Source of the DNA: Anaeramoeba ignava BMAN | Lineage: Eukaryota; Protista; Anaeramoebae | NCBI GenBank assembly: GCA_028826165.1 | Contig: JAPDFW010000091.1 | Coordinates: 124,001-188,000 of the forward strand | Reading direction: 5' to 3' | DNA length: 64,000 nt | Part shown: positions 5,077-48,165 of the stretch, one piece after another | Layout of the letters: every line of letters starts with the position of its first letter | How positions within the stretch are numbered: the first letter of the stretch is position 1 | Translations under genes and position numbers: made by a program | The notes under the pieces: model-generated | Database searches by the model: none | What the model saw: only the letters and a program-made list of their open reading frames with translations | What the model was told of the DNA's origin: nothing

Positions 5077-8053
5077 TTATTTAATTAATTTTTCGTCTTC
5101 ATGTTGATTTGGATTTGGATTTGGATTTGTTTTGGGATTCGGATTTAAATGTAAATCATCTGAATCAAGGAAATCATCAAAAATTGGTTCTTTAACATTT
5201 TTAAGATTAAGTTCTTTATATCCTCTTCTTTTTAATTCTCTTTTTTTAATATAAACGAAAATTCCAATGAAAATACCAATAACAAAAAGAGGAACAATTA
5301 TTGAAGCTGCAATAATTCCTCCTTTATTCTTACTACTATTACTAACTGTTTTCTTTTGTGTTGTAACTTTAATTGTTGTTATTGGTCCTGAATATTCATC
5401 TGGAAAACAATCTGTTGTTGTTACTGCTTGAATACTAACTGAATATTCAACTCCTCCTTCTAAATCATCATCAACATCAAAATAAGTTGTATCATTTGCT
5501 AAACATTCTTTTGATATATAATATGATATTGAATATCCATTTAATCCTGATGCTAAATTTAATTCATTCCAATTACATTCAAATCCTTCAATTATTCCTA
5601 CACAATTAAATTCTTCTACATATCCTAATCTAGCTTTCATTGTTATATTATTACTTGGTTTTCCTGATAGAATTGAATTACAACTTGTTTCAGAACATGC
5701 TCGAACTTCAACATTATATTCAATATTTCCTGCTATATTGTTGATTTCTCCATATATATTATTTCCACTTGAATTAATTTGACTGAAATTTTTCCATTCA
5801 TTTCCTTCATTAAGTGTTATTTGATATCCTTTCGCAAATTCAACTGAACTTATGTTTAATTTAATTTGTTCAATTCCTGTTTCCCATGAATTAATATTTG
5901 ATGCATTTAATTGTGTTGTTTTGAGTTCGATTGTTGAAATAATTCCACAACCTGTTTCATTATTACATCCTTTAATTGTAATTGTGTAATCCATATTTGA
6001 ATATAATAATGCTGTATTAAGAATTGTTGAATTAATTGAATAATTTTGATAATCATTAAGTTGTGATGATTGTATTGTGAAATTATAATAATTTGGTAGT
6101 TGTGAATTTGTTGGTGGTTTCCATGAACATGAAAGATTGTAAATATTAGAAGTTGAACATGTAAAGTTTGTAACTGGTCCAAATACAGTTGAAGTTGTTT
6201 GTGAAATAATTTCTCCTTGTTCATTTCCTGAACAATTTTCTGTTTGGCATGCCCATATTGAAATTGTATAAAGTGTAAGTGATTCTAAATTACTAAGTTG
6301 ATATGATGTTGAAGAATTGGATACAGAAATATTATTAATCAAATTTGTTTGTGATTGATTGAAATATGAAATAACATAGTGATCTAATTTTGGAATTAAA
6401 TTAATAACAGGAACATCTGGTTGAGACCATGATATATTGATATAATATTGATTTGGATTTAATTGTAAATCTTTAACTGAATCAATTCTTGTTGTAAGAT
6501 TCCAATGTGATGAAGCTGCACCACAAAAATTAGTTGAAATATTACATGCTCTAATTTGAATTGAATATTCAACATTTCCAATTATATTTGGATAATTCGA
6601 AGAATCAAAAATTTCATATAAAATTGAATCATTTAAAGAAGGAGAATTAATATCAATCCAATTTTCTTCATAATAATGATAATTAATCTGATAAGATATT
6701 GTTGATAAATCACCAATTTGATCCCAATAACATTCAAAAGAAGAATATAAAGAAGTACAATTCTCAATATTAACTTGATTTGGCCCAGGAAATCCTTGGA
6801 AAATATAAGCTTTACCAACATCAGAAGTATTCTCAACGGTTGCGCCAATTGCTCCAACAACAATATAATTTTCTGAAATTGAAACACTTGTTCCAAAATA
6901 ATATCCTTGGTTCCCATCACTTGATGTTAAAATTTCAATTTGATTCCAATAGTTACCATCAGATTGGAAAATATAAGCTTTTCCTTGAGAATAATTATTT
7001 CCTACTTTGCTATTATCTGCACTAACAATAACAACACCATTTGATATTGCACTACTTACTCCAAAATTATCTTCTTCGTTTCCATCACTTGCAATTAAAA
7101 TTTGTTGTTGATTCCAATAAGTTCCGTTATTTTGGAAAATATAAGCTTTTCCTTGTGCAAAATTCTCACCAATTGTTGCTTGAGAAGCACCAATTATTGA
7201 ATAATTTTTTTCAATTCCAACACTTGATCCAAAAGTATCATCCTGTTGCCCATCACTTGAGATTAAAATTTGTTGTTGATTCCAATAACTTCCGTTATTT
7301 TTAAAAACATAAACTTTTCCTTGTGTGTAATTATTCCCAACTGCTGATTGAGGAGAACCAACAATTAAAACATCATTATAAACAGCAATACTTAATCCAA
7401 AATTATCATTCGATTTTCCATCACTTGCAATTAAAATTTGTTGTTGATTCCAATAAGTTCCATTATTTTTAAAAACATAAACTTTTCCTTGTGTGTAATT
7501 ATTCCCAACTGCTGCTTGAGGAGAACCAACAATTAAAACATCATTATAAATCGCAACAGTTGCTCCAAAATTATCTTCTTGATTTTCCATCACTTGCAAT
7601 TAAAATTTGTTGTTGATTCCAATAACTTCCGTTATTTTTAAAAACATAAACTTCTCCTTGAAACGTGTTATTATTAACATCAGCTAAAGAAGATCCAAAA
7701 AAAGCAAAATCATTATTAATTGCAACACTTCCTTGGAAAATTGTTCCATTTTGATTGATTTCAATAATTTGTTGTTGATTCCAATTTGTTCTGTTGTTTT
7801 GATAGATATAAGCTTTTCCTGTTACTTGTAAAATTCCTTCTCCATTTTGATGCGATTTATCTTGAGCTGAAAGAATGATTGAATAATTTTCACAAATTTC
7901 AACTTCTCTTCCAAAATAATCACGTGATTCTCCACTTGTTTCTTCCAAAATTTGTTCTTGAGTCCAATCATAATAAATTATATTGGTTTTGATTAAGTTT
8001 AATTGAATTATTAAAAGTAAAAATAGTAAAAGAATTTGCTTATTTTTTTTCAT
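5077..8053 (-). CDS. FG-GAP beta-propeller + fibronectin type III type-I membrane receptor, copy 1 (one apparent frameshift near 7585)
   Basis: ORFs 7571-8053 and 5077-7599 join if one A is removed from GATGGAAAATCAAGAAGAT. Signal peptide, ASDG..DNFG.SVAI....LIVG repeats, FN3-like Cys/Trp modules, TM (IIAASIIVPLFVIGIFIGIFVYI) and short cytoplasmic tail. Confidence 0.85.
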
Positions 8054-8153
8054 TTTCTTTCTTTTTTTTTTTTAATTTTTTTTTTGAGAATGAAGAAAAA
8101 AATGAAATTGAGAAAAAAAAAATTTTATTTGGAAAATTTCTTTCTTTTAAGAT

Positions 8154-11060
8154 TTAAACTAATTTTTGATTTTCAGTTGCATCATTTGAATCAAGGAAAT
8201 CATCAAAAATTGGTTCTTTAACATTTTTAAGATTAAGTTCTTTATATCCTCTTCTTTTTGATTCTCTTTTTTTAATATAGAAAACAATTCCAATTACTAA
8301 TGCAATAACAAAAAGAGGAACAATTATTGAAGCTGCAATAATTCCTCCTTTATTTTTACTACTATTACTAACTGTTTTCTTTTGTGTTGTAACTTTAATT
8401 GTTGTTATTGGTCCTGAATATTCATCTGGAAAACAATCTGTTGTTGTTACTGCTTGAATACTAACTGAATATTCAACTCCTCCTTCTAAATCATCATCAA
8501 CTTCAAAATAAGTTGTATCATTTGCTAAACATTCTTTTGACATATAATATGATAATGAATATCCATTTAATCCTGATGCTAAATTTAATTCATTCCAATT
8601 ACATTCAAATCCTTCAATTATTCCTACACAATTAAATTCTTCTACATATCCTAATCTAGCTTTCATTGTTATATTATTACTTGGTTTTCCTGATAGAATT
8701 GAATTACAACTTGTTTCGGAACATGCTCGAACTTCAACATTATATTCAATATTTCCTGCTATATTGTTGATTTCTCCATATATATTATTTCCACTTGAAT
8801 TAATTTGACTGAAATTTTTCCATTCATTTCCTTCATTAAGTGTTATTTGATATCCTTTCGCAAATTCAACTGAACTTATGTTTAATTTAATTTGTTCAAT
8901 TCCTGTTTCCCATGAATTAATATTTGATGCATTTAATTGTGTTGTTTTGAGTTCGATTGTTGAAATAATTCCACAACCTGTTTCATTATTACATCCTTTA
9001 ATTGTAATTGTGTAATCAATATTCGAATATAATAATGTTGTGTTAAGAATTGTTGAATTAATTGAATAATTTTGATAATCATTAAGTTGTGATGATTGTA
9101 TTGTGAAATTATAATAATTTGGTAATTGTGAATTTGTTGGTGGTTTCCATGAACATGAAAGATTGTAAATATTAGAAGTTGAACATGTAAAGTTTGTAAC
9201 TGGTCCAAATACAGTTGAAGTTGTTTGTGAAATAATTTCTCCTTGTTCATTTCCTGAACAATTTTCTGTTTGGCATGCCCATATTGAAATTGAATAAAGT
9301 GTAAGTGATTCTAAATTGTTAAGTTGATATGATGTTGAAGAATTGGATACAGAAATATTATTAATCAAATTTGTTTGTGATTGATTGAAATATGAAATAA
9401 CATAGTGATCTAATTTTGGAATTAAATTAATAACAGGAACATCTGGTTGAGACCATGATATATTGATATAATATTGATTTGGATTTAATTGTAAATCTTT
9501 AACTGAATCAATTCTTGTTGTAAGATTCCAAGGTAATGAAGCTGCACCACAAAAATTAGTTGAAATATTACATGCTCTAATTTGAATTGAATATTCAACA
9601 TTTCCAATTATATTTGGATAATTCAAAGAATCAAAAATTTCATATAAAATTGAACCATTTAAAGAAGGAGAATTAATATCAATCCAATTTTCTTCATAAT
9701 AATGATAATTAATCTGATAAGATATTGTTGATAAATCACCAATTTGATCCCAATAACATTCAAAAGAAGAATATAAAGAAGTACAATTCTCAATATTAAC
9801 TTGATTTGGTTCAGGAAATCCTTGGAAAATATAAGCTTTACCAACATAAAGAGTATTTCCAAGACTTGCATCAGGAGCACCAACAACAATATAATTTTCT
9901 GAAATTGAAACACTTGTTCCAAAAAGCTCTCCGTATAAAGTGTCATTAGGACTTATAATTTGGAGTTGATTCCAATAGATACCATCAGATTGGAAAATAT
10001 AAGCTTTTCCTTGACTCATATATTTTCCGACTGCAGCATTATAAGCACCAATAATAACAACACCATTTGATATTGCACTACTTACTCCAAAATTATCACT
10101 AGATTCGCCATCACTTGCAATTAAAATTTGTTGTTGATTCCAATAAGTTCCGTTATTTTGGAAAATATAAGCTTTTCCTTGTGCAAAATTCTCATCAACT
10201 GTTGCCCCAAAAGCACCAATTATTGAATAATTTTTTTCAATTCCAACACTTGTGCCAAAAGTATCATCCTGTTGCCCATCACTTGAGACTAAAATTTGTT
10301 GTTGATTCCAATAAGTTCCGTTATTTTTAAAAACATAGACTTTTCCCTGTTCGGAATTATTCCCAACTGCTGCTTGAGGAGAACCAACAATTAAAACATC
10401 ATTATAAATTGCAACACTTGCTCCAAAATTATCATTTGGATTTCCATCACTTGCAATTAAAATTTGTAATTCGTTCCAATAAGTTCCGTTATTTTTAAAA
10501 ACATAAACTTTTCCTTGCTCTGAATTATTCCCAACTGTTGATTGAGGAGAACCAACAATTAAAACATCATTATAAACAGCAATACTTAATCCAAAATTAT
10601 CATTTGATTTTCCATCACTAGCAATTAAATTTTGGGATTGGTTCCAATAACTTCCGTTATTTTTAAAAACATAAACTTTTCCTTGAAACGTATTATTATT
10701 CACAGTTGCCTGAGAGGCTCCAACAAAAGCAAAATCATTATTAATTGCAACACAAGAAGCAAAAAATTCTGAAACATTTGAATTTTGAGGAGAAATTTCT
10801 TGTAAATAATTCCAATTTGTTCCGTTGTTTTGATAGATATAAGCTTTTCCTTGATCGGATATGTTGTTAATTGTTGCTTTGTAGGCTCCAATAATGCAGT
10901 AATTTTTGGCTAAATAAGAACTGAATCCAAAATAGTAAAATTCATTCCCATCCGTTGGTATTAATTCAACTTGTTTTTCCCATTCATAATATGTAGCTTT
11001 TGCAGAAAAAAACAAGAGTGTTAAAAATATTAAGATTGATTTGGGAAAAATTGAAATCAT
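8154..11060 (-). CDS. FG-GAP beta-propeller + fibronectin type III type-I membrane receptor, copy 2 (968 aa, intronless)
   Basis: Signal peptide, about 7 FG-GAP-type repeats, several FN3-like domains, TM helix, tail KKRESKRRGYKEL...DDFL. Tandem paralogue of 5077-8053. Confidence 0.9.
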   Translation of the reverse strand: MISIFPKSILIFLTLLFFSAKATYYEWEKQVELIPTDGNEFYYFGFSSYLAKNYCIIGAYKATINNISDQGKAYIYQNNGTNWNYLQEISPQNSNVSEFFASCVAINNDFAFVGASQATVNNNTFQGKVYVFKNNGSYWNQSQNLIASDGKSNDNFGLSIAVYNDVLIVGSPQSTVGNNSEQGKVYVFKNNGTYWNELQILIASDGNPNDNFGASVAIYNDVLIVGSPQAAVGNNSEQGKVYVFKNNGTYWNQQQILVSSDGQQDDTFGTSVGIEKNYSIIGAFGATVDENFAQGKAYIFQNNGTYWNQQQILIASDGESSDNFGVSSAISNGVVIIGAYNAAVGKYMSQGKAYIFQSDGIYWNQLQIISPNDTLYGELFGTSVSISENYIVVGAPDASLGNTLYVGKAYIFQGFPEPNQVNIENCTSLYSSFECYWDQIGDLSTISYQINYHYYEENWIDINSPSLNGSILYEIFDSLNYPNIIGNVEYSIQIRACNISTNFCGAASLPWNLTTRIDSVKDLQLNPNQYYINISWSQPDVPVINLIPKLDHYVISYFNQSQTNLINNISVSNSSTSYQLNNLESLTLYSISIWACQTENCSGNEQGEIISQTTSTVFGPVTNFTCSTSNIYNLSCSWKPPTNSQLPNYYNFTIQSSQLNDYQNYSINSTILNTTLLYSNIDYTITIKGCNNETGCGIISTIELKTTQLNASNINSWETGIEQIKLNISSVEFAKGYQITLNEGNEWKNFSQINSSGNNIYGEINNIAGNIEYNVEVRACSETSCNSILSGKPSNNITMKARLGYVEEFNCVGIIEGFECNWNELNLASGLNGYSLSYYMSKECLANDTTYFEVDDDLEGGVEYSVSIQAVTTTDCFPDEYSGPITTIKVTTQKKTVSNSSKNKGGIIAASIIVPLFVIALVIGIVFYIKKRESKRRGYKELNLKNVKEPIFDDFLDSNDATENQKLV

Positions 11061-14702: not shown

Positions 14703-16178
14703 ATGATAAATCCAAGTAATTTTATTAATTTAGAAAATTTAGAAAACAAAGAAAATGAAAATCAATTAAGTTTAAATCAAAGATTCAAAAGAAGAAAAGA
14801 GAAAAAAGGAAAAAGGAAAGCTTTAAAGAATATTACAAGTTTAGTTGAGAATATTCAACCTCAAAATTTTGTTTCATTAAAAGAAAAAACTAAATCAAGT
14901 AAAAATTTAAATATGAATTTAAATATGAATATGAATATGAATATGAATATAGAAGAAAAAGAAAATCAATTTATTAAAATTTATCAAGATGAATCAAATT
15001 CAAAAAAAAGAAAATGGAAAAATTCTCAAATAAATGAAGAAGAAAGTAAATCAATTAAAGAAAGTAAATCAAATAACCAACAAATTAATCAAATTCAACA
15101 AATTCATCAAAATCATCAAATTAATCAAATTAATCAAATCCAACAAAATCAAGAAGAAATTAACCAAATTAATCAACAAAATCAAGAAGAAATTAACCAA
15201 ATTAATCAACAAAATCAAGAAGAAATTAACCAAATTCAACAAATTCAACAAATTCATCAAAATCATCAAATTAATCAAATTAATCAAATTAATCAAATTA
15301 ATCAAATTAATCAAATTAATCAAATTCAACAAATTAATCAAGTTAATCAAATTAATCAAAATCAAGAAGAAATTAATCAAATTAATCAAATTCAAGAAAA
15401 CCAAGAAAATATTTCCAAATTAATTTTCGAAAATTGGATATTAAGTGAAGAAAAATTCCGACCAAACCCAAACTATATGAAAGAAAAACAAAATAAAATC
15501 ACTAACAGAAAAAGAGAAATTCTAATTGATTGGCTAAACAGTGTTATAGACGAAACAGGACTAATGTCACAAACATTATATCTAACAGTAAACTACATTG
15601 ATAGATTCTTAAGCATTTATTCAGTCAAACAAGAACAATTCCAACTTTTGGGAATAACATGCATGATAATAGCAGCAAAATATGAAGAAGTTGAAACACC
15701 CAAAATTAACACTTTTGTAGATCTTTGTGATAATATTTATACAAAGGAACAATGCTTGATTACTGAAAGAAGAATTTGTAATACTCTTGAATTCCAATTT
15801 TGTATTCCAACTCCAAAGAATTTTCTTAGAATTTTTCTTAAAGATTCAAAATCATCAAAAATTGTTGTAATTCTCGCTAATTATCTTTGCCAATTACAAC
15901 TTCAACACTTTCATTTCCTTAAATATAAACCTTCTTTAATTAGTGCAGCCTGTGTTGCACTTGCTCGCTTTATGGTTAATGAATCGGTTATTTGGAATGC
16001 TGATTGGGGTGAATGTTCAAGGTATAAAATTGATGATTTAGAAGAATGTTTTAATGATTTAAAACAAATTTTCATTCTCGCTCCTTTTGATAATTGTAAC
16101 TCAGTTTATTCCAAATATTCTGATCCTTCATTTGGTTCTGTAAGCAAACTAAATTTGCCTACTAACGATTTTAAATGA
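14703..16178 (+). CDS. Mitotic cyclin, cyclin A-like (491 aa)
   Basis: Destruction box RKALKNITS; cyclin box REILIDWL..TLYLTVNYIDRFLS..QLLGITCMIIAAKYEE; C-terminal YKPSLISAAC..VYSKYS; Q/N-rich linker. Confidence 0.92.
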   Translation: MINPSNFINLENLENKENENQLSLNQRFKRRKEKKGKRKALKNITSLVENIQPQNFVSLKEKTKSSKNLNMNLNMNMNMNMNIEEKENQFIKIYQDESNSKKRKWKNSQINEEESKSIKESKSNNQQINQIQQIHQNHQINQINQIQQNQEEINQINQQNQEEINQINQQNQEEINQIQQIQQIHQNHQINQINQINQINQINQINQIQQINQVNQINQNQEEINQINQIQENQENISKLIFENWILSEEKFRPNPNYMKEKQNKITNRKREILIDWLNSVIDETGLMSQTLYLTVNYIDRFLSIYSVKQEQFQLLGITCMIIAAKYEEVETPKINTFVDLCDNIYTKEQCLITERRICNTLEFQFCIPTPKNFLRIFLKDSKSSKIVVILANYLCQLQLQHFHFLKYKPSLISAACVALARFMVNESVIWNADWGECSRYKIDDLEECFNDLKQIFILAPFDNCNSVYSKYSDPSFGSVSKLNLPTNDFK

Positions 16179-16250: not shown

Positions 16251-18187
16251 TTAAATATTCATTTTTTTGGATGTTTTCTCTTTCATTTCTTCAATGAAAG
16301 TTTGAATATCTTTCAGTAAATTTGAATTCAAATAATTTAATGGAATTTCTTCCTTTATGAAAAATTAAAATTAAAATTAAAATTAAAATTAAAATTAAAA
16401 ATTATTAATAAAAAAAAAATACTTTCTAAATTTAAAAAAAATAGAATTAAAAAAAAAATAATAATGAAACTATTTTATATTTTTTACATTCTAAAATTTT
16501 TTCATTTTTAATTTTAATTCTTTTAATAAATTAAATTAAATCAACATTTTTATAATTAATATCAGCTCCATTTTTTATTAATAATTTAATAGAATCTGTA
16601 TTATTATCATTATAAAAACATGCAAAATGTAAAGGAGTCCAACCCTATAAATAAATAAATAAATTAATTAATAAATTAATAAATTAAAATCTAAGTTGAA
16701 ATTTTACATTCTAAATAATCATTTTTTTTAATTTTTTAATTTGAATTTTTGAAATTTGAATTAAATTACTTCCTAAATATAAATTAAAAAATTAAAAAGA
16801 AATTTTATTATTTTATATTTTTGAAAAAAATTTAGAACAAAAAAAAATATTTACATTTGGTTCATTAATTAATGAACCTTCATCAATTAATAATTGAATA
16901 AATTTTTTATCTCTATTATAACGACAACAAAAATGAAGAGCTGTCATTCCCTAAAAATATAATTAATAAATGAAAGAAATTTTTTGATTTTAAATTTTAA
17001 ATTTTAACTAACTTTTTTCTATATTAAAAAATTATTAAAATTAAAATAACATTTTAGTAAACTAATTTATTGAAAAATATTCAAACCTTTTTAACATGAA
17101 TATCTGCATTATAAGAAAATAATAATTTAAAAACATCTTCATTTGCTTTTTTTCTACAAGCATAATGAAGAGGAGTTTCATTCTAAATTTTTATCCGATT
17201 AAAAATATTAAAAATATTAAAAATATTAAAAGATATTAAAAATATTAAAAAATATTAAAAGATACTTTCTAAAAAGAAAGAAAAGAGAAAAGAAAAATAT
17301 TAAATGGAATGATTTGGCATTTTTTATTCAATAATTTATTACATTCTAAAATAATATTTAAAATAATATTTAAAATAAAAGAATTAAAACTAATATTATT
17401 TTTGTTTACTGTTTTGCAATTTACGTCTGCTCCAGAAGAAAGTAATAATGAAAGTATTTCAATATTATTAGTTTGATATTTTATTGCGATATGTAGAGGA
17501 GTTCTTTGCTATTTTTAGAATAAAAAATTTTAGTTTATTATTAAAACTAACAAATTAAAATAAAAAGTTAATTTTACTTTCTAAATATTAATTAAAGATT
17601 AAAACATTTTAAAGCATTTTAAAAATATTTAGAAAACTATTTTACTTTCTATTTTACTTTCTATTTTAATTTTAATTTTAATTTTAATTTTAATTTTAAT
17701 TTTAATTTTAATTTTAATTTTAATTTTAATTTTAATTTTAATTTTAATTTTAATTTTAATTTTAATTTTAATTTTATAAATGAATTTTAATTTTAATTTT
17801 ATATACATTGCTTTGGTTTATATTAATACCACAAGCAATTAAGAATTCAATAACATCAATTTTAATACCAACTAAACAAGCGCAATGAAGTAAATTATTT
17901 CCCTTTAACATAATAATTTCTTTATATAAATTTCTTTTGGAAAAACTTTTTTCAAAAGATTTTTACTTTCTAAATTAAATTATTTTTTTAAAATCATTTC
18001 AAAAAAAAATAATAATTATTAATTTACATCCTTAAAAAAAAATAATAAAATAAAATAAATTTTAAATTAAATAAAATAAATAAAAAGCAATAAAAACATC
18101 AATAACAGAAAAATCTATATTTGAATTTAAATTAGATTTAAAAATTGATAAAGGTTTTTTATCTTGAATAAATTGAAAAAAATTCAT
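16251..18187 (-). CDS. Ankyrin-repeat protein (~237 aa) encoded by 7 normal exons and 11 micro-exons
   Basis: Main exons 18187-18098, 17902-17807, 17508-17410, 17182-17087, 16950-16855, 16644-16546, 16352-16251. The five internal ones each encode one ankyrin repeat (GNNLLHCAC, QRTPLHIAI, NETPLHYAC, GMTALHFCC, GWTPLHFAC). AG|NNN|GT micro-exons lie between them. Confidence 0.9.
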
Positions 18188-41317: not shown

Positions 41318-43092
41318 ATGAATGATTGTTTATTTTTTGGAAGAAATGACGAACCAAAGTTTATCAAAAATGAATCAGATACAATAACAAAACCAATTCA
41401 ATTTAAATTTGAAAATGAAAAAGAAAATGAAAATGAAAATGAAAAACAAATTAAACAAATTTCATTGGGTGCTTTTGGAACAATTTTCCTTTTTAAAAAC
41501 GGAAAAGCAATAGAATATTTAAATGAAAGATGAATTAAATCAAAATCCTCAAAAAATCCAAATTGAAGAAAATATTCAAAAAGTAACTGTTGGTTATGCA
41601 AATGAAGCAATTTTAACAAAAGAAGGAAATGTATTTGCCAAAGGAAGAAATATTAATCCAAAAAATCCAAATGAATTTATCAATATTTCATCATTAATTG
41701 AAGATACAAATGATAGAATAATTCAAGATATTGTTTCTGGATACAAGTCAATTTACTTATTAACTTCAAATCAAAATGCTTATGGAATTGGTTCAAATAA
41801 ATATGGTCAACTTGGTTTTGATTATAAAACACTTGAAGAAACAGAAAAACCAATTTTAATGATGAAAAATGTTTCTAAAATATTTTCAGGAAATTCTTCA
41901 AGACATGTTTTTCTTTTGAATTCAAATCAAGAATTATTTGGATGTGGTGATAATAAATATGGTCAACTTGGATTAGGAGAATCAAGAAAAAAAGAAGAAA
42001 CAATCCAAAAATTAACCAAAATACAAAGTATTCCAAAAGGCAAAATAATTGATACTAAGTCTGGATCTTGTCATTCAATAATGTTTATTGAAAAAGAAGA
42101 TGAAAATCCAAAAAGAAAACTTTATTCAACTGGAGATTATCAATTAAATGGACTTGGCAAAAATAAAGATACTTATGAATTTACTGAAATTGAATCATCT
42201 TTATTTGAAAATGATAATATTCTTGAATTTTCTGTTGATGATGAACATACTTTGATTTTAGTTTCCAATTCAAAATTAATTGTATTTGGAAATAATGAAT
42301 ATGGTGAATTAGGAACTGGAGATACAAATGAACAATCAATTCCAATTCAAATTGAACTTCCTAAATTAAGATTTAATAAAGAAATTTCCAATTATCATAT
42401 TTCTTGTGGAGTTTATCAATCATTTCTTTATTATTCTCCTTCTTTTTCCAATCTTGAAGAAGATTTGATAAAATTATTTAGAAGAAAAGAATTTTGCAAT
42501 ATTTCATTTAAAACAGAAAATGGAGAAATAATTTGAAGCTCATAAATTAATATTGAAATATAGATTAAATCAAAATCAAAATCAAATTGAAAAACTTCAA
42601 GAAATTATTTCAAAAAAATCAATTAAAGAATCAAATCAAATATTTGAAATGATTTATTCAAACCGAATAATAAATCCAATATTATATTTTGAAATTAAAG
42701 AAATTATAAATTTAAATGAAAAAATTGAAGAAACAATTAAAAGAATTTATTTAAATAAAAATGAAAATATAAAAGATTTTATAATTGAAAGAAAAGAAAA
42801 ACAATATAAATTTCCTAAATTAATATTAATAATGAGAAGTGAATTATATCGAGGAATGTTTTTATCTGTAACTGAAGATACTTCTAATAAAGTTACAGAT
42901 TATAGTGAATTAAGTGAAGAATCATTTCAAATATTTGAATATTGGATTTATTCAAATCAAATCAAAGATGAAATTGAAATTACACAAGAAATCATTAATG
43001 AAATTAAAAAAGGAATTGATTATTTTCAATTAAATCAAACATATCCAAATTTATTTGATTTATTAATTAACAAATTTAATAATCAAAATTAA
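41318..43092 (+). CDS. RCC1-repeat + BTB protein, copy 1 (two apparent +1 frameshifts near 41527 and 42533)
   Basis: ORFs 41318-41533, 41523-42536 and 42553-43092 are colinear with copy 2. G.N.YGQLG RCC1 repeats; C-terminal BTB-like parts (AHKLILKYR; LILIMRSELYRGMFLSV..FEYWIYS). Confidence 0.85.
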
Positions 43093-43615
43093 AATTAAAA
43101 TCAAAAATTAAAATCAAAAATTAAAATTAAAATTAAAATTAAAATTAAAATTAAAATCAAAATTAAAAATTAAAATTAAAATCAAAATCAAAATTAAAAT
43201 CAAAATCAAAATTAAAATCAAAATTAAAATTAAAATTTAAATAAAAATTAAAATCAAAATCAAAATTAAAATTCATTTTAAAATTAAAAATAAAAATCAA
43301 AATTAAAATGAAAATTAAAATCAAAATTAAAATTAAAATTAAAATTAAAATTAAAATTAAAATCAAAATTAAAATTAAAATCAAAATTAAAATTAAAATT
43401 AAAATTAAAATTAAAATTAAAATTAAAATTAAAATTAAAAATTAAAATTAAAATTAAAATTAAAATCAAAATTAAAATTAAAATTAAAATTCAAATCAAA
43501 ATTAAAAATTAAAATTAAAATTAAAATTAAAATTAAAATTAAAATTTAAATTAAAATTAAAAAAATAAAAAGCAAAAAAAGCAAAATTATTTTTTTCATT
43601 TTTTTCTTTTCAAAA

Positions 43616-45377
43616 ATGAATGAAATTATATTTTTTGGTTCAAATGAAAAACCAACAATAATAAAAAATGAAACAGAAATAATAACAAAACCAATTCAAT
43701 TTAAATTTGAAAATGAAAATGAAAATGAAAAACAAATTAAACAAATTTCTTCATCAGGAGATTTTTCAACAATTTTCCTTTTTAAAAATGGAAAAGCAAT
43801 AGAATATTTAAGTGAAAATGATTCAAATCCAAATCCTTCAAAAATCCAAATTGAAGAAAATATTCAAAAAGTAACTGTTGGTTATGAAAATGAAGCAATT
43901 TTAACAAAAGAAGGAAATGTATTTGCAAAAGGAGAAGATATTAATCCAAAAAACCCAAAAGAATTTATCAATATTTCATCATTAATTGAAGATAAAAATG
44001 ATAGAATAATTGAAGATATTGTTTCTGGAGCTAGTTTAATTTATTTATTAACTTCAAATCAAAATGCTTATGGAATTGGTTTAGATGATTATGGTCAACT
44101 TGGTTTTGATTATAAAACACTCGAAAAAACAGAAAAACCAATTTTAATGATGAAAAATGTTTCTAAAATATTTTCAGGAATTACATCAAATAATGTTTTT
44201 CTTTTAAATTCAAATCAAGAATTATTTGGATGTGGTGATAATTTTTGGAGTCAACTTGGATTAGGAGAATCAAGAAAAGAAGATTGGCAAATCCCTAAAT
44301 TAACCAAAATCCAAAATATTCCAAAAGGTAAAATAATTGATATTCAATGTGGATCTTGGCATTCAATAATGTTGATTAAAAATGAAGATGAAAATCCAAA
44401 AATGAAACTTTATTCATGTGGAAATTCCCAATTTAATGGGCTTGGCAAAAATACTTATGAATTTACTGAAGTTAAATCATCTTTATTTGAAAATGATATT
44501 ATTCTTGATTTTTCTGTTGGATTCGATCATACTTTGATTTTAACTTCTAATTCAAAATTAATTGGATTTGGAAGTAATTTATATGGTCAATTAGGAGCTG
44601 GAGATACAAACCATCAATCAATTCCAATTCAAATTGAACTTTCTAAATTAAGATTTAATGAAGAAGTTTATAATTATCATGTTTATTGTGGATATCGAAG
44701 ATCATTTCTTTATTATTCTCCTTTTCTTTCTTCTTTTTCCAATCTTGAAGAAGATTTGATAAAATTATTTAAAAGAAAAGAATTTTGCAATATTTCATTT
44801 AAAACCAGAAAATGGAGAAATAATTTCAGCTCATAAATTAATATTGAAATATAGATTAAATCAAAATCAAAATCAAATTGAAAAACTTAAAGAAATTATT
44901 TCAAAAAAATCAATTAAAGAATCAAATCAAATATTTGAAATGATTTATTCAAACAGAATAATAAATCCAAAATTATATTCTGAAATTAAAGAAATTATAA
45001 ATTCAAATGAAAAAATTGAAGAAACAATCAAAAGAATTTATTTAAATGAAAATGAAAATGATTTCATAATTGAAAGAAAAGAAAAACAATATAAATTTCC
45101 CAAATTAATATTAATAATGAGAAGTGAATTATATCGAGGAATGTTTTTATCTGTAACTGAAGATAAATCAAATAAAGTTACAGATTATAGTGAATTAAGT
45201 GAAGAATCATTTCAAATATTTGAATATTGGATTTATTCAAATCAAATCAAAGATGGAATTCGAAATTACAAAGAAATCATTGATGAAATTGAAAAAGGAA
45301 TTGATTATTTTCAATTAAATCAAACAAATCCAAATTTATTTGATTTATTAATTAACAAATTTAATAATCAAAATTAA
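43616..45377 (+). CDS. RCC1-repeat + BTB protein, copy 2 (apparent +1 frameshift near 44806)
   Basis: ORFs 43616-44836 and 44844-45377; AAAACCAGAAAATGG versus AAAACAGAAAATGG in copy 1. Confidence 0.85.
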
Positions 45378-45392
45378 AATTAAAATCAAAAA

Positions 45393-46593
45393 TTAAATTT
45401 TTTTTTCTTCTTGTAAATCCTGTGCAAGAAATTCAATTATTTTTGGATCTGTTACAATTTCTTGAATTTTCTCAAGTTTTGAATTTACCAAATTAAATTC
45501 CAATTCCCTTTTTTTAGATTTTTCAATATTTTTTTGGAAATGACATTCTAATTCGTTATATCTTGCTTTATGTTTTTCTCTTTCTATTCCCAATTTATCA
45601 ACCAATTTAGAAATATGATTTTGATTGATCTCATCACACTTTTCAAAAATTAACTTGATTTTGTTGAGCTCATCAATAATTTCCTTTTCCAATTTTGGAT
45701 TTTGATGAATTCTTATATGAAACTTGATTTTATTAATAATATAATCCAATTTCATTTCAAATTCATCATTTAAAATAAGGAAAATATTATAGGCTGATTG
45801 ATATTTTTTTGGAGATGATATTATTTGCTCTGCTTGTGATTCAAGATCCGAAAATTCAGTTGTTGATTTGGATTCATCTTCTTCTAATGAATCTTTTTCT
45901 TTTGGAGAACTGTCAGATTCACTTTTTCCAATAAATTGAGGATTAACCAAATAAAGTGATTGATCCAAAGGTGTTTCTATGATTTCATTTTCTAATGGAT
46001 TAAGAATTGGAATTGAAACACATTGAAAACATATTTTTCCTTTTAATTGAATAATTGTAACATATAAATGAACCCAAACATCTTGGTTTTGAGTATTTTT
46101 ATGAAGCCAATAAAAATCAATATTTGCTGTTGTATTTCTAATTATTTTAGTTTTATTTTTTTTTTGAAAAAAAGAAGATGAATAAATATTTTTTTTTGCT
46201 TTTTTTTTTTTTTGCTTTTTTTTTTTTGGAAAAACCAAATTATTTTCTCATTTCTATAAAATTATCAATTTTCATTACAATTATAATTAAAAATAATGGG
46301 AGTTTTGGATTTATTTACTTAAGTATTCTTTGAGTTTGTTCTTCAATTGCTTCTTTTAAGGGTTTATTAAGTTGGGGTTGAAAAGGAGCTGAAAAATTAG
46401 GATCAACAATTTTATTTACTAATTCTTCTCTACATGTTAAACCTAATAATTTTGCACAAGAATCATTTACTTCAATACAAAAATGATCTTCTAAACTAAT
46501 GAGAATCATTGCTTCTTTGGCTTCTCTAATTGATTTTAGATAAGTTTCTGTTTCTTTTCTTTTAATAATTTTTGCAGATTTTGAATTTCCCAT
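45393..46593 (-). CDS. Myristoylated PAS-domain/coiled-coil protein, paralogue B
   Basis: Exons 46593-46319 and 46137-45393; same intron position and motifs as paralogue A. Confidence 0.87.
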
Positions 46594-46758: not shown

Positions 46759-48165
46759 TTAAAATTTTTTTTCTTCTTGAAAATCAAATTGGAAAAATTG
46801 AGTAATATTTGGATCTGTTGTTAATTCTTGAATTTTTTGAAGTTTTGAAATTGCCAATTCAAATCCTAATTGAGTTTTTTCTGATTTTTCAAGGTTTTTT
46901 TGTAAATGAGATTCTAATTCATTATATTTATCTTTATTTCTTTCTCTTTCAATTTTTAATCTATCAGCTAATTTTGAAATTTGAGTTTGATTTGATTTAT
47001 TACATTCTTCAAAAATTGATTTGATTTCATTTAATTCATCAATAACTTTCTTTTCTAATTTTGGATTTTCATTAGCTCTAATAATAGATTTAATTGTATC
47101 AATTTTATCATCTAATTGCATTTCAAATTCATCACTATCAAGAAGTAAAATATTAGAAGTTGATTGGGGTTTTTTGTTTTTGTTGTTGATCTTGTTGTTT
47201 TTGATCTTGTTGTTGAATTTGATGTTGTAAATGTTGTTGAATCTGTTTCAATTTTTGCTTCAAGATCTGAAAAATCAGTTGTTGATTTTGATTCATCAGC
47301 AAAAAAATTTTTTTCTTTTTGGGAACTTTCAGATTCATTCATTGCAATAAATTGAGGATTAACCAAATAAAGTGATTGATCCAAAGGTGTTTCTCTGATT
47401 TCATTTTCTAATGGATTAAGAATTGGTCTTGAAATGCATTGAAAACCTTGTTTGCCTTTTATTTTGATAGGTGTAATATATAAATGAATCCAAACATCCT
47501 CATTTTTAATATTTTTACTTAACCAATAAAAATCAATACTTCCTGTTGTATCTCTATTTAAATTTATTTTTGTTAAAAAGTTTGAAGAAATTTGAAAGGT
47601 GAATAAAAAGGTGAATAAAAAATATTTTCCTTTTTTCTTTTAAATTGATAATAAAATTAATAATCTATTAAATAATTTAATTATTTTATGACTCAGCATT
47701 AAATTTATTATTAATTAAAATCTTTTTATTATTTTTTTTAATTGTGATTTTATTTTTAAAATAATAAATAAGATCAAAAAATCGAATTAAAAAAAGTGAT
47801 CAAATTAAGAGAAATAATTCTTTAAAAATTCGAAAAGCAAAAAAAAAACAAATTATAAAAAAAGAAATAAAGTGTTTTTTATTAACTTACTTTAACAACT
47901 TTTCACTTAATTCTTGAATAGCTTCATTTGTTGGTTTATTAAATTGAGGTTGAAAAGGAGCTGAAAAATTAGGATCAATTGGTTTATTTATTATGTCTTT
48001 TCTACTTTTTAAACCTAATAATTTTGCATAAAGATCATTCGCTTCAATACAAAAATGATTTTCTACTACGATAACCATTGCAGGTTCTTTGGCTTCTCTA
48101 ATTGATTTTAGATAAGTTTCTGTTTCTTTTCTTTTAATAATTTTTGATGATTTTGAATTTCCCAT
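46759..48165 (-). CDS. Myristoylated PAS-domain/coiled-coil protein, paralogue C (apparent frameshift near 47170)
   Basis: Exons 48165-47891 and 47553-46759; G4T6 homopolymers at 47166-47175 versus G3T5 in paralogue D. Confidence 0.82.

Follow-up and report, generated by a model that had tools for sequence, protein, structure and literature searches.

Single-codon exons at the inter-repeat hairpins of ankyrin genes in Anaeramoeba ignava

Exons of three bases are usually rare curiosities. Codon-sized micro-exons with extensive alternative splicing are described, in papers that cite the original work, for the nank (NACHT-ANK) genes of Tuber melanosporum (Iotti et al. 2012, via PMC4986451, PMC3689799, PMC13449251). 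The Schistosoma micro-exon genes (MEG) contain runs of very short exons of 3-81 bp, most of which preserve the frame (bioRxiv 10.1101/2023.06.21.545858). Ultra-short micro-exons of 1-15 nt in plants and animals are as a rule included, and their mis-annotation is widespread (PMC8831610, PMC4317164). Tetrahymena LRR genes consist of 90-bp exons with one repeat each (PMC6564038), and brown algal LRR/TPR receptors are cited as one-repeat-one-exon arrays (in PMC13449251). A literature search returned no paper connecting Anaeramoeba with micro-exons. The Tuber nank genes, as presented by the citing papers, are the closest precedent, and codon-sized exons are thus a known kind. The new elements are the transcript evidence from paralogs for the inclusion of codon exons and an example in A. 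flamelloides.

The window, which denotes the whole 64-kb stretch of A. ignava DNA that was analysed, contains an ankyrin gene on the minus strand at 18187-16251 (Table 1). The open frame comprised 237 codons once the codon exons were joined, giving a product of 237 aa. Seven large phase-0 exons were separated by gaps of 136-298 nt, and ten micro-exons of 3 nt and one of 6 nt were used, which together accounted for 36 of the 711 coding nt. These exons are micro-exons in the usual sense, that is, internal, no longer than 15 nt, bounded by canonical AG/GT and flanked on both sides by introns of normal size. The 17 introns measured 55-83 nt, apart from a single intron of 146 nt in which an ATTAAA microsatellite lies. 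If retained, 16 of the 17 would introduce an in-frame stop and the remaining one a frameshift. Each of the five middle repeat exons exceeded the PF00023 cut-off separately, and relative to the 33 positions of the Pfam Ank model they started at 2 or 3 and ended at 31 or 32. A preliminary description of the gene had named the triplets with their AG and GT flanks, given the intron sizes and asserted phase 0 throughout; the measurements agreed with it for all triplets, all introns, and the large exons and codon exons alike. A cyclin gene in a single open frame (14703-16178, plus strand) lies tail-to-tail with the ankyrin gene, the stops being about 70 nt apart. Two FG-GAP/fn3 genes (5077-11060, minus strand) and RCC1-like genes (41523-46238) are arranged in tandem in the same window. 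The start of an intronless ankyrin gene, whose open frame is long and uninterrupted, was located at 1-175 on the minus strand (G000:C92:123768-124172), so the same contig carries both intronless and codon-exon ankyrin genes.

Table 1. Positions in the window of the exons and related elements of the ankyrin gene.
Feature	Position	Strand	Remarks
Exon 1 (ATG, N-terminal cap, end ...SVID)	18098..18187	-	90 nt, phase 0
3-nt exon GAT (Asp)	18028..18030	-	AG/GT flanks
3-nt exon AAA (Lys)	17967..17969	-	AG/GT flanks
Ankyrin repeat exon 1	17807..17902	-	96 nt; PF00023 positions 2-32
ATTAAA microsatellite within the 146-nt intron	17663..17776	-	
3-nt exon AAA (Lys), the first of two copies from a 12-nt tandem duplication	17658..17660	-	
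Second AG-AAA-GT copy, 9 nt off the first	17646..17648	-	usable only as a substitute, same codon
3-nt exon AAA (Lys)	17578..17580	-	AG/GT flanks
Ankyrin repeat exon 2	17410..17508	-	99 nt, Pfam
3-nt exon AAT (Asn)	17343..17345	-	AG/GT flanks
3-nt exon AAA (Lys)	17266..17268	-	AG/GT flanks
Ankyrin repeat exon 3	17087..17182	-	96 nt, Pfam
6-nt exon AAAAAA (Lys-Lys)	17013..17018	-	AG/GT flanks
Overlapping AG-TTA-GT	17011-17009	-	junction 4: alternative parse with one codon
Ankyrin repeat exon 4	16855..16950	-	96 nt, Pfam
3-nt exon GAA (Glu)	16770..16772	-	AG/GT flanks
3-nt exon AAT (Asn)	16708..16710	-	AG/GT flanks
Ankyrin repeat exon 5	16546..16644	-	99 nt, Pfam
3-nt exon AAT (Asn)	16488..16490	-	AG/GT flanks
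3-nt exon AAA (Lys)	16423..16425	-	AG/GT flanks
Last exon (C-terminal cap, EEIPL start)	16251..16352	-	stop 16253-16251

The occurrence of AG-N3-GT in the six gaps was evaluated against 1000 dinucleotide shuffles. Twelve matches were observed, whereas 0.57 were expected and the shuffled maximum was 3. They corresponded to the ten used codons, the AAA duplicate and the overlapping TTA triplet. Spacers of 0, 1, 2, 4, 5, 8 and 9 nt between AG and GT gave no match in the six gaps, and no spacer length apart from 3 nt exceeded background. The joint probability that all six gaps could supply exactly 6 nt was about 1.5e-8, and the improbability that had been asserted for this regularity was thereby quantified. 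This value argues against the reading in which the triplets are not exons at all, being chance motifs, recursive sites or intron remnants, and the hairpin residues are missing from the mRNA. That reading is in line with the NCBI models, in which the large exons are directly joined. Recursive splice sites were rejected, since the six gaps contained no internal zero-length AG-GT site and three bases were kept in paralog transcripts. The genome-wide counts and transcript-derived proteins described below also oppose the reading of the triplets as non-exons, which is considered highly improbable. No comparable codon-exon signal was found in the other genes of the window. AG-GAA-GT at 47542 is located within coding sequence and hence is no codon exon.

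The linker between the conserved N/D and TPLH was measured in ankyrin repeats of the same genome and of other organisms. Its length was 7 residues in 112 of 124 linkers from intronless A. ignava paralogs and in 502 of 627 from an outside set of 150 unrelated ankyrin proteins. Positions -4 and -3 were the most variable in the own-genome linkers and shared this rank with -1 in the outside set. The codon exons encode exactly linker positions -4 and -3, whose counterparts in designed ankyrin libraries are positions 2 and 3, both randomised (PMC4308713). The earlier remark that these hairpin positions are randomised in designed ankyrins was therefore correct.

The A. ignava assembly (42.8 Mb, 147 contigs) belongs to a metamonad genome with an A+T content of 80.65%, and a long exon taken from it matched A. 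ignava proteins at 100% identity. Paired AG-NNN-GT, for which a genome scan had been suggested, were searched as double TTAG-NNN-GTA with a spacing of 40-80 nt. The scan gave 208 matches, compared with 10 for a 4-nt spacer and 31 for a 2-nt spacer, and almost all of these control matches were within simple repeats. A reversed-pattern control gave 154 matches and was judged unfair, the reversed motif probably being frequent in coding and repeat DNA; the spacer-length controls were preferred. Directly upstream of an x-x-T-P-L-H exon, YAG-N3-GT occurred 172 times genome-wide and the 4-nt control twice, which is difficult to reconcile with triplets that are not exons. All 16 inspected match loci were ankyrin genes, many with a terminal BTB domain, and the domains found in the paralogs were BTB or kinase. 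Given how often a BTB domain closes the paralog proteins, substrate-adaptor-type proteins are probably numerous in the family. Hundreds of intronless ankyrin repeats were present alongside the codon-exon genes.

The codon-exon layout is family-wide. Family statistics were collected from 17 loci picked by the double-exon pattern and are biased toward two-codon junctions. One repeat was carried per exon of 93-99 nt in these loci, in uniform phase, with all boundaries of the 18187-16251 gene in phase 0. In 32 of the 38 cleanly parsed junctions, the codons supplied equalled the codons needed (30 with two and 2 with one). Among the six mismatched junctions, one conceals a large exon that had gone unrecognised and another exceeds the need by one codon; the remaining four belong to two genes and contain 7-10 codon exons where three are needed. 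Across the family, junctions contained 0, 1, 2 or up to 10 codon exons, and the median intron length was 69 nt. The splice sites of codon exons were near-uniform, more so than those of large exons. A GTA donor followed 77 of 81 codon exons and 29 of 42 large exons, a difference that is partly biased by the discovery pattern.

Inclusion of the codon exons was assessed from transcriptome-derived EukProt proteins. P0151 contains ...MKNF-Q-KFTPL... and ...VKNI-E-GNSS..., and its Q and E coincide with the AG/GT-flanked 3-nt exons CAA (L044 1562-60) and GAA (L044 1307-05). A donor or acceptor shift of the neighbouring exons at these gaps would yield V or K/stop, unlike the Q and E. A decoy AG-AAT-GT in the same gene, 22 nt before the next acceptor, was unused. 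The NCBI model of this gene, KAJ5079660.1, is without Q and E. P0309 (EP01156 P002548) contains ...ISD-K-T-GKKP.... The pattern AG-AAR-GT, AG-ACN-GT and then the GKKP exon start had a single genome match, on contig C66, where AG-AAA-GT...AG-ACA-GT...AG-GGN immediately precedes the exon for the C-terminal part of P0309. As K-T matches the paired AG-AAA-GT and AG-ACA-GT, back-to-back codon exons were spliced in, and K-T is absent from the NCBI model of this C66 gene. The F of P0309 probably derives, by coordinates, from a TTT codon exon in the gene on C57/C76. In that gene, T-C lies by coordinates within a large exon, and pattern searches that treated T+C and K+F as codon-exon pairs gave nothing. 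P0309 is probably a chimera, in which the assembly fused two genes inside the TPLH motif, the sources being C76:413.5-414.7 kb and C57:614.3-615.4 kb for the N-terminal part and C66:113-114.6 kb for the C-terminal part. Near-identical copies of its first gene are present on C57 and C76. The repeats missing from this chimera are therefore uninformative on skipping and were dismissed as evidence for it.

Transcripts confirmed five codons, distributed over three genes and each taken from a single assembled isoform, so that minor skipping is undetectable at this level; for one codon the match is by arithmetic only. The few transcript-derived paralog junctions all include the codons, and none showed a skipped isoform. 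The codon exons of the sister genes are truly spliced in and have been missed by genome annotation. The transcript-derived residues refute for the paralogs the view that the triplets are not exons, and the preliminary claim that gene finders overlook such exons is upheld, the residues being absent from NCBI models and present in transcript-derived proteins. The protein of the 18187-16251 gene was not returned by a single-exon HMMER search or by a stacked-exon profile, in which generic ankyrins dominated the matches. By analogy with its paralogs, splicing almost certainly includes its codon exons as well. In the ANK-BTB family, the EukProt ORFs P0275, P0308 and P0317 were called "complete" and begin within the last exon. 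These starts may reflect incomplete splicing or retained introns, or broken upstream assemblies, and are a possible sign of slow splicing near codon exons.

We consider it probable that inclusion of the codon exons is the normal state and that they act as loop modules over evolution, the 18187-16251 gene being predicted to encode a small, spliceosomally assembled, ankyrin-only protein-binding module. The unit consists of a repeat exon of 96-99 nt, an intron, a one-codon exon, an intron, a second one-codon exon and an intron, and inclusion of both codons would yield the standard 7-residue linker. The short and very AT-rich introns could be recognised by intron definition and excised successively. 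Because of this stepwise removal, the 3-nt exon would never have to be recognised alone. The layout may have spread by tandem duplication of entire repeat units. Since every boundary is in phase 0, the hypervariable codons of the hairpin tip would be detachable, and they could be gained, lost, duplicated or recombined with no change to the framework. Loop diversification would then occur chiefly between paralogs over evolution rather than per transcript, with a presumed benefit. The 12-nt duplicate, the fused 6-nt exon and the varying number of codon exons per junction resemble snapshots of such turnover.

The preliminary description had gone further and proposed an alternative-splicing diversifier, in which codon exons are skipped or chosen combinatorially to give many hairpin variants per gene. 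The codon-by-codon assembly that it described stood, given the residues in the transcript-derived paralog proteins. For the diversifier, this gene leaves little scope, since each gap needs two codons and offers two. As the only duplicate is synonymous (AAA/AAA), skipping could only shorten the hairpin. Surplus codons were likewise lacking in 32 of 38 junctions of the family, and every transcript-derived junction seen includes its codons. The phase-0 exons, their position at the tips of binding loops, the Tuber nank precedent and the Trinity isoform number i5 of one paralog speak for such a diversifier, which is nevertheless rather unlikely overall. It is weak for the 18187-16251 gene and most plausible for the paralogs with long chains, namely the genes at C2:5.7-10 kb and C20:70-73 kb, whose loops offer 10, 10, 9 and 7 codons against a need of three. 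The C2 paralog has more than 20 codon exons. These chain-gene loci are L036-L038 (G000:C2:5732-10186) and L053 (G000:C20:70452-73545), and a kinase-like segment lies upstream in the former gene. Linkers of more than 8 residues were rare in the intronless set of the same genome (1 of 124), which favours splice choice in the chains. Linkers of at least 9 residues were not rare in the outside ankyrins (47 of 627), and therefore the chains may simply encode long loops; constitutive inclusion accounts for them only in this form. Room for combinatorial splice choice is thus possible chiefly in the chain genes. A per-transcript combinatorial code, with chain genes picking subsets and ordinary genes skipping at regulated rates, is doubtful. 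If it were true, BTB- and kinase-linked ankyrin proteins would carry natural DARPin-like libraries of binding loops, possibly for recognition of proteins from bacterial symbionts or pathogens.

The layout was also examined in a second species. In the ANK-BTB gene KAJ3443821.1 of A. flamelloides, AG-AAA-GT and AG-GGA-GT lie between the ...DSRN exon and the EYTPL exon (L184:1786-2132 and L185). With the codon exons AAA and GGA, which the annotation omits, the linker regains its 7 residues. Both are present in a second A. flamelloides strain, which is weak evidence given the near-identity of the strains. Codon exons were absent from three further ANK-BTB genes of A. flamelloides, two having ordinary introns and one being intronless. 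The average ortholog identity of the two Anaeramoeba species is 37%. A metagenome pattern scan gave no ankyrin-linked match among the 78 loci screened, two contigs with a human-gut metagenome label aside. The contig L088 (Ga0209737_10036046) carries at 2277-2764 a dense AG-NNN-GT run, 18-30 per ~900 nt, with no ankyrin match, which is probably a tandem repeat.

The sharing of the layout by two species at this level of identity bears on whether the codon exons bring any benefit. Passive spread, with the repeat, of a single intron gain in an intron-rich and AT-rich lineage is a real rival to the evolutionary-benefit reading. The exons would then be a splicing burden or neutral by-product that affects expression through slow splicing and intron retention and does not affect binding diversity. 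The in-frame stops and the frameshift expected from retained introns, the hundreds of intronless ankyrin repeats in the same genome and some assembled transcripts with no open frame across the ankyrin part are consistent with such a burden. Besides the occurrence in two species, it is opposed by the introns bracketing exactly the two linker positions of highest entropy and by the failure to find such exons in the other window genes. This alternative is possible, and the balance is against it. It is compatible with the preferred explanation of normally included loop modules as regards splicing and differs only on the reason for the persistence of the layout.

Taken as loop modules or not, hundreds of 3-nt exons occupy the tip of the ankyrin hairpin, the site that protein engineers randomise, in this deep-branching metamonad, and such exons are also present in a congeneric species. 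They provide a large natural test set for the spliceosomal processing of exons whose length rules out exon definition, and for whether protein evolvability can shape intron position. In practical terms, the public A. ignava ankyrin models that were checked are without the codon-exon residues.

Compared with the known systems, the Anaeramoeba genes resemble Tuber nank, as far as the citing descriptions of the latter go: both belong to an enlarged family of ankyrin-containing genes in a microbial eukaryote, and both have numerous one-codon exons. The nank genes combine NACHT and ankyrin, whereas the 18187-16251 gene is ankyrin-only and its paralogs carry BTB or kinase domains; its assignment to the nank type was rejected on this architecture. 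In Anaeramoeba there are typically exactly two codon exons per repeat junction, and they encode the hairpin tip. Extensive alternative splicing is reported for Tuber in the citing papers; the single assembled isoforms of Anaeramoeba all include the codons, a level at which minor skipping would escape notice. Because the supergroups differ (Metamonada and Fungi), the codon exons of the two lineages are likely convergent. Anaeramoeba shares with the MEG genes runs of micro-exons that automatic annotation overlooks. The MEG products are secreted proteins built mostly from micro-exons, with introns of 0.1-5 kb and many splice variants, whereas the Anaeramoeba product is a folded repeat protein with micro-exons at loop tips only. 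The gene was not regarded as a MEG, given the small micro-exon share of its coding sequence (36/711 nt) and its introns of 55-146 nt. Plant ultra-short micro-exons are scattered over many families, with about 70-240 coding ones per genome, whereas in Anaeramoeba hundreds cluster at a single structural site in a single repeat family, often in direct succession. The Tetrahymena LRR genes and brown algal arrays are similar in their single-repeat exons of fixed length and uniform phase and in an expanded family suited to shuffling. Anaeramoeba differs from them in using ankyrin rather than LRR/TPR repeats, phase 0 rather than phase 2, and additional single-codon exons between the repeat exons.
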